Shown here: in pieces, positions 40,086 to 46,986 of the stretch
How positions within the stretch are numbered: position 1 is the stretch's first letter
Layout: each line of letters starts with the position of its first letter
From: Cyanophora paradoxa CCMP329
Lineage: Eukaryota; Plantae; Glaucophyta
DNA: 64,000 nt
Assembly: GCA_004431415.1 (NCBI GenBank)
Contig: QPMI01000610.1
Span: 186,001 to 250,000, forward strand
Direction of reading: 5' to 3'
The notes under the pieces: generated by a model
What the model was told of the DNA's origin: nothing
Databases searched by the model: none
Seen by the model: only the letters and a program-made list of their open reading frames with translations
Translations under genes and position numbers: made by a program

Positions 40086-40569
40086 CCTCCTGCGTGCAGT
40101 CCGCGACCCTGCAGATAGCCGGCTGAGCAGGTTGCCTGGGTACGCGGTTTTCGATCGAAAACTCGGCCGAAGGTAAACTTTGACCGAATACTCACTACGA
40201 GTCACTAGAACACACCCTCCGCCGTTATGCCTCCTCAAGCGCCCGTGTCGGGCGCAGCCCGCCGCGGAGCACCGGCGCGGGACGCAGCTGGACGCACAGC
40301 CGCTAGCTACACCCCCCGGGAGTATCAAATCGCCCAAAGTCGCGCCGCCGCGATCGCGGGTGCGGGCCCCGCCGACGCTCCCGATGTTCGAATGACACGC
40401 TGCAGGCCGCGAGCGCGGCAGGCAGCATGCACGTGAGGCCTCGGCGGCGGTGATACGAGCGGTTAGCCTCGCGCTCACCTAGCCCGCGCGCGCTCATGTG
40501 CACGCTCGTACGCAGCGAGCCGCGTTTCGGCTGAAATCTCAGGGGAAGTCGGCGGCCGCGGGGGCGGCG

Positions 40570-43500
40570 ATGGCGCTGCAGGCGGCCGGGCCGTTCGAGG
40601 GCTTCGAGGAGGAGGCGGCGGAGCCGGACGCGATCCTGCCGCTGCAGCGCATGCCGGGCGGGGCGCGGGAGCGGCTGGAGGAGCTCGTGCCGAACCTCCC
40701 GCGCGCCCGCGTGCTCGTCTTCATCGACCACGACAACTGCCAGAACGCGCTCCCCGCCCTCCTCGACGCCGGCTCCGCCCTGCAGGCCCGCCCGCGCGCC
40801 CGCCCCGCGCCCCGCCGCGCCCCCACTGACGACGCCCCGCTTGCAGCCTGGGAAGGCCTTCGTCCTAGCATTCCACGGGCCCGACGTGCCCACGCGCCGC
40901 CTCCTGCAGCAGGCGCGCCTCCCGTACCCCGGACCTCGGCGCCCGCCCGCATCCGCGCCCGGGCCCCGGCTGAACCCCCGGCGGCGCAGCTGAACAACAA
41001 GGGGTCGGTGCGGGAGGTGCAGTCGCGCACGGGGGGCAAGAACGCCGCCGACGTCGCGCTGACCTTCCACGCCGCCGGCCTCCACGTCCTCATGCCGTGC
41101 GCCCGATGCGGCGCCCCCGGCCGCCCCCGCCGCCCCCGCCCGCCCACCGCCCCCGCGCTTCGTGCGCAGGCCGGAGGCGGCGTTCCTGATCGTGTCGGGG
41201 GACAAGGCCTACGCCGAGCTCGCCCAGCAGCTCACCGCCGCCGGCCGCCGCGCCGACTGCCTCAACGCCCAGCAGGCCCGCCCCGCCCCGCCCCCCGCCG
41301 TCTCTTCTTCCTCCTCCTCTGATTGGCCCGGGCCTCCAGACGCACCTGGGGCGGTACCTGTACCCCTACCTGCGGGCGGTGGAGAAGGGGCTGCCGATGC
41401 TGGAGGGCCGCGCGGGGGGCCCCGAGGAGGAGGCCGCCAGCGGCGCCATCTTCCAGCGCGCCATGGACAAGGCGCGTGCCCCTTTCGAGAATTGGGGTAC
41501 CCCCGCTGATTCATCCCCCGTGCAGGTCCGGGAGCGGCTCGGGCGGGAGGCGCCCTCGCACAAGGACAAGCTCATCAACATGGCGCGCACGTACCCCTGG
41601 CCGGCCGCCCCCGCGGGCGCTCACCTTCTGCCCCGCAGATCAAGTTCACGCTGACGCGCGACGAGCGCATCGTCGTGCCCCCTCGCCTCGTCCTCCACGA
41701 GCTCGTCGAGGTACCCCTTCCCCCCCGGCCGGCCCCCCCCCCCCCCCTCCTCCCCCCCGGCTCACTCCCCTGGCACCGCGCAGAGCGGGGACGTGCGGTT
41801 CGGGGAGGACGAGTCGGCGGAGTACCTGAGGCCCTGGGCCCGCGGCTTCCCCCGCCCCCCCTCGCCCCCGTCCTCGCCCCCGCCCCTGCCCCTCGCCCGC
41901 ACCCACGAGGAGGAGCGCCCGATCGGCGCCGCCCCGGAGTCCTTCGGGAGGCGCCCGCAGCCCTTCTCGCCGTACGCCTCCTCCGCCTCCCCCGCCTCTG
42001 CCGCCCCGCGGCATCCCTACCCCGCCTCCCTCGCGTCATCCTCCTCCGCGCCCTCGTCCGCCCCGCCCCTCTCGGACCCCTCCGCCTCCTCCTCCTCCGC
42101 CGCCTCCGCCTCCGCGTTCTCGTCCGCGCCCTCCGGCCCCGCCCTCTTCATCGGCCGCGTGCGGATCGCGTCCCCGTCCCCGCCCCCGCCCCCGCCTCCG
42201 TATCCGCCCTCGGCGCCGCCGGAGCGGCCGGTGCCCACGGGAGTGGAGCTGGAGGCGATGGTGGACGCGGCGGCGGAGCGGCTGCGGTCGCTGCAGGCGG
42301 AGGGCCGGCTGCTGCCGCCGAAGCGGCGGGACAAGGCGGAGAACTTCGTGCAGAACGCGCTGGGGGCGCGGCTGCACGCGTACGCGCTGCGCCCCACCGT
42401 CGACGCCGTCGTCGGCGCCCTCGTCCGCCGCGGCCTCCTCTCCCTCGGGCCCGGGCCCGGCCCCTTCTCCTCCGCCTCCTCCTTGGAGCAGCACTCGAGC
42501 CCCGCCCCGTCCCCGGCGCCGGCGCCGGCGGCGAGGAAGGAGGCGCCGCCCGCCTCCGCCTCGGCGGCCGGCCTCTCGGAGGCGGTGGCTGCGGTGACGG
42601 GCCGCCTGCGCGCCCAGAGCGAGGAGGGCAAGCTCCTGCCCCCGCGCCGCCGCGATAAGGTCCGAGCGATTCGATCCGATCGGACCCGACCTGACGATCC
42701 GACGCGGGCTGACGGGGCGGCAGCTGGTGAACTTCGCGCTGAACGCGCTGGGGCAGGGCGAGGAGGCGCGGCCCTTCGCCGCTGCGGTGGTGGAGGAGAT
42801 GGCCCGCCGCGGCATCCTCCTCCTCGAGGGCCACGCCGTCTCCTACCCCCCCAACTCCCCCGTCCACCCCCCGCCCCTCCCCCTCCCCGCCCAGCCCCGG
42901 CCCCCCGCCCCGTCCCCCGCCCCGCCCTACGGCGGCGGCTTCTGCGCCCCTCCGCCGCCCTCCGCCGTGCCCCTCTGGAGGGACCAGCAGCCGGGCCCGG
43001 CGCCGCCCGCGCCCCTTCCCCCCTCCCACCCCACGTACCCCCCTTCCAAGCCGCCCTCCTACCCCGCGGCCTTTTTCCCGGAGGCCGCTTCCCGCCTGCT
43101 CGAGCCCCCGGCGTCCCCGGCGCCGCCCGCGGGCGCCCACGAGCCGCCCAAGTCCCAGCTCCCCACCGCCGCCGCCCAGTCCTACTACGTCCCCGTCCCC
43201 GTCGCCAGCGCCGCCGCCTCCACGTTCGGGGGCCTCGAGCCGCCTCCCCACAGCGGGCCCGTCGGCGGGCCGCCCGCTTGGTGCGCCGGCGCCCTCGCTG
43301 CGCCCGTCCCGCCCGTTCCGACGTGCCCGCGGGCGCAGGGCGGCGCCGAAGCAGGGGCCGACGCTCGGCGACTTCGCGAAGGGGCCAGGGCCAAAGGCGG
43401 CAGCGGGGGCGGGCGCGGGGGCCGCCGTGGACGAGAAGCACGCCAAGGCGGAGCTGCACGAGCAGCTGCAGAAGCGCGGCGCCAACCCGCCCTCCTACCG

Positions 43501-43899
43501 CCTCACCGCCGACGAGGGTGAGCCCGCGCGCGCGCCCCGCCTGTCCGATGCACCGCTTGCTGAGCGACAATGGCGCAGGTCCGCCCCACGCGCGCGTGTT
43601 CACCGTCGAGTGCTACATCGACGGGGCGGTGCGCCGCCGCGCCGCTTCTCCCGCTCCGCCCGAGTGAGCCCGAGCCTGACGCCGCGCAGCTGCGGGGAAT
43701 AGGGAAAGGCCCTTCGAAGAACCACGCAGAGCGGGCCGCCGCCGCCGACGCCCTCGCAAAGCTATCAGGCGGTGGTGGCGGTGGCGTCGGCGGCGCCGCC
43801 GTGCCGCTGCCGTACGGCTCGGAGAAGCTCGTCCCGAGGTCCCCGGCGGAGGGGCAGGATTTTCAGTCGGCGTACTCCATGCCCTTCTCGGCGCGGTAG
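40570..43899 (+). CDS. PIN/NYN-like nuclease + three winged-helix-like repeats + C-terminal dsRNA-binding domain, 12 exons
   Basis: VFIDHDNC...FVLAFHG...GKNAADVALTFHAA.LHVLMP...FLIVSGDKAYAEL (PIN). Three repeats of P-x-[HKR]-x-x-D-K-[LA]-x-N...V-x-x-[LM]-x-x-x-G. dsRBD AKAELHEQLQKRG.NPPSY...GPPHARVFTVEC...GKGPSKNHAERAAAADAL. Confidence 0.85.
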
Positions 43900-45060
43900 C
43901 CGCGCCCAAGCGGGCCCCGCGGGGCACGCACCCGTCGCGTCCCCCACGGTCCTCATCGAGAAAGGCGACGATTTGCATAATTTTGACCGAGGCGGATTTA
44001 TTCCCTCGGTCAAAATTATGCGAATCGGGCCGCCAACTCGCTCGGCTTCTTCGACTAACAAGTACAAATCGAAAATGGCGCCTCCATTTTGGATTTGTAC
44101 TTGTTAGTTGGAGAGGCGCGAGTTGGCTGCTCCCTCGATGGGGAGCGTGCGGGGCGCGGCGGGCCGCGCCCGCCCCCGGCCCGCGGCATCGAGTACGCGG
44201 AATTCCTCCTCCTCCTCCTCCTCCGTATCCTCCCCCCTTCTTCCAGATCCTCCCCTTCTCCGGGTCCTCATCCGCCGCCGCTGCCGCGCGGCACCAGCGG
44301 AGCGTTGCGCCGACTCGCGCTTCTCGGGTTCATCTGTCAGCTTTTCGGGTTTCCCGCCCTAGGCCTCCATCCGCTTCTGGTCCCCCGCCCTCCGGCCTCT
44401 CCGGTTCGACGCCTCCCCGTTTCGACGCCTACAGATTCCCGGTCCCCCGTCCTCCTTCGCCGCGCCACCGCTCGCCTCGCGGGGAGGTCGCTCGGAGGCC
44501 GGCCCGGGGGAGCTCGAGGTCGACGTTGCAGCCCCGGCCCGATCAGTCCGCGATCGCAGGGGCCGGGGGACGCGTCGCGCCTCGCAGCGCCCTCGCCGCT
44601 TCAGGAACCGTTGCAAGGCTCGTCGAGCTCCCGGAGCTGTCTTGCCGGTACCCCCGTGCACGACAGCGACGAGGGGCGTTCCGCGAGTCCCAACTATAGC
44701 CACCGCTATAGCTACTTGCAACTGTTCCTGAAGTGGCAATGATGCTTAGAGATGTGTTTTTGTCCTTTCTTTCACTTTCGATTGTATACTGAGATGAGGT
44801 CCGTGTCGCATCGTTGATCGATGTTTCAAAGGAGCGGTTATTTGTACGTTTACGTAGCCATGTATAGCCTAGTAGCCTACAGTAGGATCAGGATGTCTCA
44901 GGGAGAAGCTTTTGCGCAAATCGGCAATGTGAGCGCTAGCGCTAGCATTTGCAAATAATTGGGGAAGGACCTCCTTCCCCTTCCCCCACTTGGGGGTGCT
45001 CGGGTGCCCACCCTAAGCCAAAATGAAATGTCCCGACCTTTCAAAACCCGGGTTTTCTCG

Positions 45061-45143: not shown

Positions 45144-45699
45144 CAATAACACGTTTTCAAAAAATACGATCTAGCGCCTCACCAAATGGCGGTATATCTA
45201 CCGGACCAAGTGCGCCTGAATGCGCCTAATACGCCCGACGATTCATGTCATACATTCCGAGACCGTAGAGGCACAGGGTGGCCCGCTAGGCCGCCTCAAG
45301 TACCTGTTGTACCGAGCGCCGAAAAAAAGCGCTCCTGAGAGTTTTCAGCCGATCGAGACTCGAGCAGGGGGGAATGGATGCCGATATCGTGTTGCAGTAC
45401 CCGGCAGGCTAGCCGACTAGCTAGCTGAGCTCCGGCTAGCTGCGCATGCCTTGCAATGCGGCAACAGCTCATCAAGCACTTCGGAACGTGAAAGAGTGCA
45501 GGAAGAAGACGCCCGCTACGCCGCCTGCCCCGCGCCTGCCGTCCGCAGATGCTGCCCCGCGCCTGCTGTCCGAAGATCTAGATGCGACAGTCTTGCGCCG
45601 AAAGGTGCGCTCGCGCGCCGCCCGGCAATCTCGCGCCGGGCGCGCACAGAAGCCGACGCGTGTCGTCGAACAGCTCCTCTTGCGCAAGGTCCTCTCTGC

Positions 45700-46285
45700 G
45701 CGGCGGCGCGGCTCGTCGGGCGGGGCGGAGGCGCGGCGGGCGGCGGCGCGGTCGCCGGGCGGGGCGGAGGCGCTGCGGGCGGCGGCGCGGCGCGCCGCAC
45801 GGGGAGCAGGCGCGGCGGGCGGCTGCGCGGCGTGCCGGGCGGGGCGGAGGCGCGGCGGGCGGCGGCGGGGCTCGCCGGCCGCGGGCGGGGCGGAGGCGCG
45901 GCGGCCGGCGGGCGGCGGCGCGGCTCCGAGGCTCGCCGGGCGGGGCGGAGGCGCGGCGGCCGGCGGCGGGGCTCGCCGGGCGGGGCGGAGGCGCGGCGGG
46001 CGGCGGCGCGGCTCGCCGGGCAAGGCGGAGGCGTGGCGGGCGGCGGCGCGGCTCGCCGGGCGGTGCGGAGGCGCGGCGGGCGGCGGCGCGGCTCGCCGAT
46101 CGGGGCGGAGGCGCGGCGGGCGGCGGCGCGGCTCGCCGATCGGGCGGAGGCGCGGCGGGCGGCCGCGCGGCGCGCCGGGCGGCGGCGGGGCTCGCCGGGC
46201 GGGCGGAGGCCGGCGCGCGGCGGCGCGGCTCGCCGGGCGGGACGGCGGCGCGGCTCGCCGGGCGGGGCGGAGGCGCGGCGGGAGG
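45700..46285. repeat. GC-rich minisatellite, about 40-bp unit, roughly 12-14 degenerate copies
   Basis: Consensus GGGCGGGGCGGAGGCGCGGCGGGCGGCGGCGCGGCTCGCC, repeated in tandem. Confidence 0.9.
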
Positions 46286-46986
46286 CACGTCTACGCCTAA
46301 CGAGCATTAGCTGCAGTCTGCAGATGCTGTTTTTGTTGCATTAGGCCACATGGCCACCTCGCACATCCCAAGACGCCGTGACGAGCAGGCCTAGGGGGCG
46401 GCGGCGAGTCGAGTCAGCACTATCTCTATCTCGGCTAACCGTTGAACCTGACCTTTCCTACTCAACCGTTAGAGGTCCTTCCCCTCCAACAGGGCCACTG
46501 CGACAGCAGTGTCCCTGTTCCGTTCATATTGTGCACGTAAGCACTGAATTTCGAAGGATACACATTAGCCTGAGTTAAGCAACGGAGCAGAGTCTTGGCC
46601 ATGCATATGGGGCCCGGGGTCGACGTCTGATATCGATATCGATATTTCCAATTACGAACCTCGGAAACGTTAACGCGCCGCTAATGATCGAGATCAGCGG
46701 CTGATTCAGTACTAGTGAGCCTTGCAGCATATCCGCGCCGCGATAGCAATAAGATAGAAAATACGATAGCAGAATACCAACAATATTGTATTTCTATACT
46801 GTGAACACACCGAGAATAAATAGCTGAGCGGGGTAACTTCGCAACTTGGCGACGGAGCGAGGGTACCGGTGGGTGCGAGGGCGGGGCCTCGGGCCGAGGG
46901 AGGAAGGTCCGGGGAAGGACGCGGAGGGCCCGGGTGCAGGCTGCCGCGAGCCGAAGGCGGGGCGGGGGCGCCGCCCGGGGCTATAG

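Follow-up and report, generated by a model that had tools for sequence, protein, structure and literature searches.

The stretch considered here, referred to as the window, is the 64,000 nucleotides (nt) from 186,001 to 250,000 of contig QPMI01000610.1 of the glaucophyte Cyanophora paradoxa CCMP329, it has a G+C content of about 73% and positions are counted from its first letter. On the forward (+) strand between 40227 and 43970 lies a eukaryotic gene rich in short introns, the predicted product of which carries three winged-helix repeats between an NYN-clade PIN-like nuclease domain and a C-terminal double-stranded RNA-binding domain (dsRBD). A sequence-only reading of the locus had proposed twelve exons in one frame, and this agrees with a coding sequence that runs in a single frame from the ATG at 40570 to the TAG at 43897-43899, with 2628 nt giving 875 codons and a stop on three-frame translation. 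The exons of this coding model, all on the + strand, lie at 40570-40785 (exon 1), 40847-40912 (exon 2), 40990-41096 (exon 3), 41170-41275 (exon 4), 41340-41471 (exon 5), 41526-41582 (exon 6), 41639-41710 (exon 7), 41784-42659 (exon 8), 42724-43280 (exon 9), 43339-43517 (exon 10), 43579-43628 (exon 11) and 43690-43899 (exon 12). They were obtained by three-frame translation and then compared with public sequencing runs. The annotated protein, here P0001 (EukProt tig00021348_g20565.t1, Cyanophora paradoxa, 956 amino acids (aa)), was found by querying proteins with the uninterrupted open reading frame of the window that covers exon 8, and the 12-exon model is identical to its residues 82-956. Full-length domain work was done on P0001, whose numbering is used throughout, with the joined exons serving as a check of frame and identity.

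The public model opens 81 codons upstream, at the ATG at 40227, and has 14 exons in total, the concatenation of which yields all of P0001, with upstream exons on the + strand at 40227-40359, 40406-40461 and from 40516 onward. The exons within 40227-40569 encode either an 81-residue N-terminal extension or form part of the 5' untranslated region (UTR), depending on whether translation starts at ATG 40227 or ATG 40570. The introns are 46-77 nt long and 5 of the 13 are GC-AG introns, each of which is supported by spliced RNA contigs, with the donors CAG/GCCCGC, CAG/GCGCGC, AAG/GCGCGT and ATG/GCGCGC found among the introns of the 40360-43689 region. The exon layout proposed earlier stood overall but not at the end of exon 2, where a GT donor at 40925 is ruled out by RNA contigs in favour of a GC donor and a true end at 40912, nor at the 5' end, where the public start lies 81 codons earlier. 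An alternative frame for exon 6 that uses a GT donor is likewise ruled out by RNA contigs, which end this exon at a GC donor.

The four public runs that provided these contigs are taken to be RNA in practice, because their contigs skip exactly the proposed introns. Spliced contigs support 11 of the 13 introns, namely coding introns 1-7, 10 and 11 (9 of the 11 introns of the 12-exon coding region) together with two 5' introns on the + strand at 40360-40405 and 40462-40515. At the 5' introns one contig (X3 record 11) links 40358/40405 and terminates at 40461, with another (X1 record 1) beginning at 40515. It is apparent that the gene is expressed, and the splicing read from the DNA is for the most part confirmed.

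Two junctions are of prime importance for the question of whether all of these domains belong to one polypeptide. Introns 8 (42660-42723) and 9 (43281-43338) are bridged by none of the RNA contigs listed, with no 42659/42724 or 43280/43339 junction among them, and a search for short protein fragments across the exon 9/10 junction found none and returned RNase III proteins only. The architecture might thus be an artefact of the gene model, with intron 9 (or 8) kept in the message and a PIN-winged-helix protein ending before the dsRBD, and retention of intron 9 would indeed lead to a stop at 43519. However, both introns are canonical GT-AG introns of ordinary length (64 and 58 nt) and both are spliced in the public model. 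Removal of intron 8 is needed because it completes the third winged-helix repeat, which then aligns with the second and folds at a predicted local distance difference test score (pLDDT) of 91. Splicing is also seen in the dsRBD exons, whose expression depth is similar to that of the remaining gene, yet they could not provide a separate protein because they have no start codon of their own, with no ATG in the dsRBD frame between a stop at 42740-42742 and the end of exon 10, and the sole methionine of the spliced dsRBD exons sitting 5 residues from the C-terminus. An artefact of this kind is considered very improbable, and the public annotation and the frame logic of intron 9 provide good indirect evidence that the PIN exons are joined to the dsRBD exons.

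The N-terminal domain occupies approximately 40711-41275 on the + strand (exons 1-4), with residues 129-239 corresponding to approximately 40711-41255, and was assigned as a PIN-like domain of the NYN clade, of PIN_11/PIN7 type, from Pfam and from an AlphaFold2 (AF2) model. The best-scoring Pfam family is PIN_11 (PF18479), at 36.1 bits against a cut-off of 26.6 and over profile positions 4-115 of 118, NYN (PF01936) is also above its cut-off (25.4 bits vs 24.2) and PIN7 (PF18475) is below its gathering cut-off (27.3 bits vs 34). Searches with single exons were weak, with E-values of 0.037 for PIN_11, 0.16 for NYN and 0.0013 for the dsRBD family dsrm. The AF2 model of the PIN domain and repeat 1, built with a 34-sequence family alignment, has a mean pLDDT of 87.5 and a predicted template modelling score (pTM) of 0.72, and its top structural matches are the NYN domain of MARF1 (5yaa, Z 11.4 with 124 residues aligned; 6fdl, Z 10.8) and VPA0982 (2qip, Z 9.2), with the next match after these NYN entries, a HAD domain, close at Z 9.0. 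Foldseek gives the NYN match of the PIN model a probability of 1.00. The fold is without the helical insert and its best structures are NYN domains, which places it in the NYN clade. A structure search of the ESM Atlas returned ZNF451 first (template modelling score 0.56), with a feature search of the same atlas giving nothing usable and a sequence search of the Protein Data Bank (PDB) with the PIN and repeat 1 region nothing useful. The PIN fold and the likeness to ZNF451 noticed from the letters alone are thus both upheld, the latter by the PIN_11 score and by the first place of ZNF451 in the atlas.

The PIN domain keeps the motifs DHDN, AAD and SGD, and the acidic and polar residues that are candidates for an active site are D134, D136, N137, D196, S220 and D222. 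Across the 34 aligned sequences N137 and D222 are invariant, D134, D196 and S220 are at least 90% conserved and position 136, read by eye in the 34 rows, is always Asp or Glu, with D134, D136, D196 and D222 all present in the Cyanophora protein. The conserved residues correspond in position to D178, N181, D246, S270 and D272 of MARF1, an enzyme that is Mg/Mn-dependent and that loses its RNase activity in Asp-to-Ala mutants (PMC6217404). Of the four catalytic Asp residues typical of NYN domains (D178, D215, D246 and D272 in MARF1), which are placed where strands 1, 2 and 4 end and helix 3 begins, the counterparts of D178, D246 and D272 are conserved and the position after strand 2 is not.

Downstream of the PIN domain are three winged-helix repeats on the + strand, the first at approximately 41433-41840 (residues 278-352, exons 5-8), the second at approximately 42228-42458 (residues 482-558, within exon 8) and the third at approximately 42552-42864 (residues 590-672), split by intron 8. 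They are supported by hhalign and, for repeats 1 and 3, by AF2. Repeats 2 and 3 are 50% identical (E 1e-15), which is far beyond chance. Each repeat was compared separately with a profile of 15 tails of PIN7/PIN_11 proteins from organisms other than Cyanophora, and hhalign scored 94.6% (E 6.7e-8) for repeat 1, 91.2% (E 1e-6) for repeat 2 and 93.4% (E 2.5e-7) for repeat 3. In the other direction, a local profile of the three repeats finds matches in the tail of many PIN7-type proteins, in every case 30-50 residues past the PIN domain, and repeats and tails have in common the motif RPxRxxxLxNxIxSxF...G...G.v.Y. The definition of a PIN7 tail as a winged-helix tail following a PIN domain is a working one taken from the alignment, not a curated one. 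In the AF2 models repeat 1 has three helices and a beta-hairpin, with a match to the cullin WHB domain at Z 7.8, and repeat 3 is a confident winged helix of the order helix-helix-helix-hairpin (pLDDT 91.4, pTM 0.81), the leading structural matches of which are all winged helices (SelB at Z 8.2, MCM, GntR, LexA and cullin WHB). Homology thus links the repeats to the C-terminal tail of bacterial PIN7 proteins, and the modelled repeats adopt a winged-helix fold, so the three repeats and their resemblance to the PIN7 tail that were first seen by eye both stand. Such matches show fold and not function, because scores in the range of Z 6-8 are flagged as common by the search tool.

Two more specific identities for the repeats were rejected. 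The LOTUS/OST-HTH family (PF12872) gave no match at E <=1 for 18 repeat and tail sequences or for the full protein, no LOTUS entry appeared in a profile search of PDB sequences and none was among the top fold matches; this rejection applies at the sequence level, and the winged-helix fold itself is shared. The helix 3 and wing of repeats 1-3 are without the Asn, Tyr and Trp signature of Z-alpha domains, and Z-alpha structures occur only among the generic winged-helix matches, at Z 5.7-6.2. No Pfam family matches any of the 18 repeat and tail sequences, and a PDB sequence search with repeats 2-3 gave nothing useful.

The dsRBD at the C-terminus is encoded at 43442-43764 on the + strand (residues 846-912, exons 10-12) and matches Pfam dsrm (PF00035) over its full length (1-66 of 66) with an E-value of 8.7e-17 and 61.9 bits against a cut-off of 23. 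It also matches the C-terminal part of the NCBIfam RNase III model TIGR02191 (positions 149-219, E 2.4e-15), shows the GPxH loop and the S-K-x-x-A-E helix start of RNase III, and has its closest database relatives in bacterial-type RNase III, with identity up to 51-56%. The RNase III-style domain predicted at this position is therefore a canonical dsRBD, and canonical dsRBDs bind A-form RNA. The RNase III catalytic domain (PF00636 or PF14622) is absent from the Pfam scan of P0001.

When the PIN domain and repeat 1 served as the query for HMMER in an exhaustive search across 1.84 billion representative proteins, 34 were matched at E <=1e-3, these being the protein itself and 33 relatives. Three of the relatives are Cyanophora paralogs and the others are ZNF451-like PIN proteins from animals, PIN7 proteins from bacteria and unnamed proteins from metagenomes, and a dsRBD was found in none of the 33. 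A word-indexed homolog search among long proteins returned P0001 alone. Among published surveys, Matelska et al. (PMC5499597) describe PIN_11 as eumetazoan and linked to zinc fingers, with PIN7 bacterial, and Anantharaman et al. (PMC2848206) report that NYN is paired in parallel fashion with OST-HTH and that OST-HTH is in some cases fused to a dsRBD, without describing the present combination. The original description of PIN_11, as a eumetazoan domain fused to C2H2 fingers, does not extend to P0001, which is from Cyanophora paradoxa and in which no zinc-finger family is found. The view that the architecture is an undescribed one has thus held, as no second protein with PIN, winged-helix repeats and dsRBD was found.

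In two metagenomic proteins (P0015 and P0017, on contigs of 1.2-1.4 kb) this winged-helix tail and a PIN_11/PIN7 domain are joined to a Di19-type zinc finger, which is another undescribed architecture of this module. A bacterial relative of 600 aa, P0024, with a PIN7 domain and winged helix, is encoded on a gammaproteobacterial contig (L001:4845-7803) directly after a separate NYN-domain gene and approximately 5 kb from the type III CRISPR genes Cas10 and Cas_NE0113.

With these domains in place the protein is, with moderate confidence and by analogy, best read as a modular metal-dependent endoribonuclease that is brought to structured or double-stranded RNA. The PIN domain would hold a divalent cation via D134, D136, D196 and D222, aided by N137 and S220, and cut RNA. 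It would do so with its ancestral winged-helix partner, as in bacterial PIN7, here triplicated on flexible proline-rich linkers, and the winged-helix array would add contacts to RNA or to partners in the manner of the LOTUS array of MARF1. The RNase III-type dsRBD would anchor the protein on A-form duplexes. Likely targets would be RNAs with, or near, double strands, such as viral or transposon double-stranded RNA (dsRNA), the products of RNA-dependent RNA polymerase (RdRP) or structured precursors. If MARF1 is a guide, cleavage would probably occur in single strands beside a duplex and not inside it, as NYN nucleases prefer single strands, and since the NYN domain of MARF1 cuts single-stranded RNA and cuts dsRNA weakly (PMC6217404), "dsRNA-recruited" is a safer description than "dsRNA-cleaving". 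Catalytic activity, metal use, substrate, winged-helix ligands and biological role are all points that we infer. The interpretation offered by the sequence-only reading survives in part, in its domain calls, the likenesses to ZNF451 and PIN7, the analogy of design with MARF1 and the uniqueness of the architecture, whereas its functional proposal, of a dsRNA-directed nuclease that would act in antiviral or transposon control and independently of Dicer, is a hypothesis.

A number of points weigh against an RNA-directed endonuclease. In addition to the unbridged introns 8 and 9, the residue D215 of MARF1, which follows strand 2, is without a conserved counterpart and the second acidic residue of the DxD/EN motif is conserved instead, so the geometry of the active site has to be assumed. 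The same architecture occurs in no other organism's protein among those searched, and conservation cannot support function because no ortholog with this architecture was found. The PADLOC defence models match neither P0001 nor eight bacterial PIN7 proteins, and the gene neighbourhoods of two bacterial PIN7 and winged-helix genes hold nothing conserved or informative. In the winged helices the third helix is not basic but acidic and hydrophobic, and is therefore compatible with protein binding as well as with nucleic-acid binding. To our knowledge biochemical data have been reported for no PIN_11 or PIN7 protein, and the function of both families is given as unknown by Matelska et al. 2017 (PMC5499597).

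Some of these points would also suit a protein in which the PIN domain is catalytically silent and which acts as an RNA scaffold or adaptor, with the dsRBD on a duplex and partners recruited by winged helices and by the surface of the PIN domain. Loss of the acidic active-site residues is usual in inactive PIN domains, whereas every acidic residue that is conserved across the family, together with the Asn and Ser, is kept in the Cyanophora protein. On the other side, nuclease activity is known for neither PIN_11 nor PIN7 and the PIN-like region of ZNF451 is reported to mediate a protein interaction, through contact with p300 (Matelska et al., PMC5499597), some LOTUS winged helices bind proteins instead of RNA (PMC6217404), and the third helix here is, as said, not basic. 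A purely structural role appears unlikely.

A further possibility is that the enzyme targets DNA or RNA:DNA hybrids, for example during repair, at R-loops or on intermediates of transposons, with the winged helices as DNA binders. The modelled winged helix does resemble those of the DNA-binding proteins LexA, GntR, DtxR, FtsK gamma and MCM, and PIN-like nucleases are known to include DNA flap nucleases (PMC5499597), but these winged-helix matches are of the generic kind, at Z 6-8, the nuclease domain is structurally closest to NYN-clade RNases and a canonical dsRBD recognises A-form RNA. A DNA-directed enzyme is thus distinctly improbable, and recruitment of the nuclease to RNA remains the preferred reading.

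As to the biological setting of such a nuclease, RdRP genes are present in Cyanophora and exonic small RNAs are plentiful there (PMC3700990), from which it follows that dsRNA is present in this alga. As this type of PIN domain has also diversified in Cyanophora, a role in RNA silencing or defence is plausible. A far more specific proposal is that the protein is a dsRNA-directed nuclease, not of the RNase III kind, within a glaucophyte pathway of silencing, antiviral or anti-transposon defence, where it would, for instance, trim or destroy duplexes made by RdRP and so feed the pool of unphased small RNAs from exons that is abundant in Cyanophora, perhaps regulating itself by means of hairpins that follow its stop codon. 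If so, the PIN proteins expanded in Cyanophora, among them fusions of tandem-PIN, dynamin-GTPase and beta-helix type, would constitute a toolkit of innate immunity not described before. Taken as a whole this proposal is speculative and must be held doubtful.

The three PIN_11-like paralogs in Cyanophora are P0002, P0005 and P0010 (tig00020510_g9937, tig00020510_g9940 and tig00021036_g17298), which include a double-PIN protein, a protein of 2424 aa with a dynamin-family GTPase and a right-handed beta-helix protein, and judged by gene numbers two of the paralogs are near each other on one contig. The set looks like a lineage-specific expansion. Varied domain fusions are frequent in conflict systems.

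The hairpins in question form a nested twin-hairpin element of 227 nt at 43934-44160, assigned to neither strand, that starts 35 nt past the stop codon. Inside an outer stem are two near-perfect hairpins, at 43969-44027 and approximately 44034-44130, with inverted repeats at 43969-43992/44004-44027 (96% complementary) and 44045-44078/44084-44117, and the twin hairpin is predicted to fold as RNA at -162 kcal/mol (z = -18). Both hairpin motifs occur once in the window and are the only long inverted repeats in the 64 kb that are not GC-simple, with Rfam giving no match over the whole window. The RNA contig of the gene extends to 43970 and another begins at 44039. The element could be a remnant of a fold-back transposon, or else a dsRNA element or structured region in the 3' UTR of the gene. 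Further downstream, at 45450-46340, is a repetitive and very GC-rich region that has several frames on both strands with repeated Arg/Ala/Gly-rich units, for example GGAEARRAAARLAGR, and that is probably a tandem repeat.

PIN_11, which had been described as animal-only and without known function, now reaches a deep-branching alga and is tied to bacterial PIN7 through a common accessory domain. This winged-helix domain, which comes after the nuclease domain in PIN7/PIN_11 proteins and for which no Pfam model was detected, can now be defined. The architecture is seen in one species only and we know of no genetic tools for Cyanophora. It is a second, independent assembly of the MARF1 plan of an NYN-type nuclease, a winged-helix array and an RNA binder, with a clear and testable prediction of the substrate because the RNA binder in this case is a dsRBD. 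If active, the protein would open a way to study how RNA is silenced or surveyed in glaucophytes, a group in which exonic small RNAs abound.

The closest parallel in design is with MARF1 (limkain b1) and with bacterial LabA-type proteins that combine NYN and OST-HTH domains, in which, as in the Cyanophora protein, an N-terminal PIN domain of the NYN clade is followed by repeated winged helices and further RNA-binding modules. The RNase activity of MARF1 requires its winged-helix array, and MARF1 controls retrotransposon RNA (PMC6217404). The analogy with MARF1 drawn at the outset is thus apt at the level of design, and the MARF1 NYN domain is also the best structural match to the Cyanophora PIN domain. 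In contrast to MARF1, the Cyanophora nuclease belongs to the PIN_11/PIN7 or 'minimal NYN' subfamily, its winged helices give no match to OST-HTH, and it is without RNA recognition motifs and has a dsRBD, which MARF1 does not.

ZNF451 has in common with the Cyanophora protein the DxDN, AAD and SGD motifs of PIN_11, but the latter is a glaucophyte protein without zinc fingers and with winged-helix repeats and a dsRBD. The same module of PIN and winged-helix tail is found in bacterial PIN7 proteins, with PIN7 clusters of the ESM Atlas aligning over both domains, although the bacterial proteins have a single tail and no dsRBD. With RNase III and Dicer the protein shares the type of dsRBD and the logic of a nuclease tethered to dsRNA, whilst it has no RNase III catalytic domain, the active site of its PIN domain is a different one and, unlike those enzymes, it would be expected to favour single-stranded RNA.

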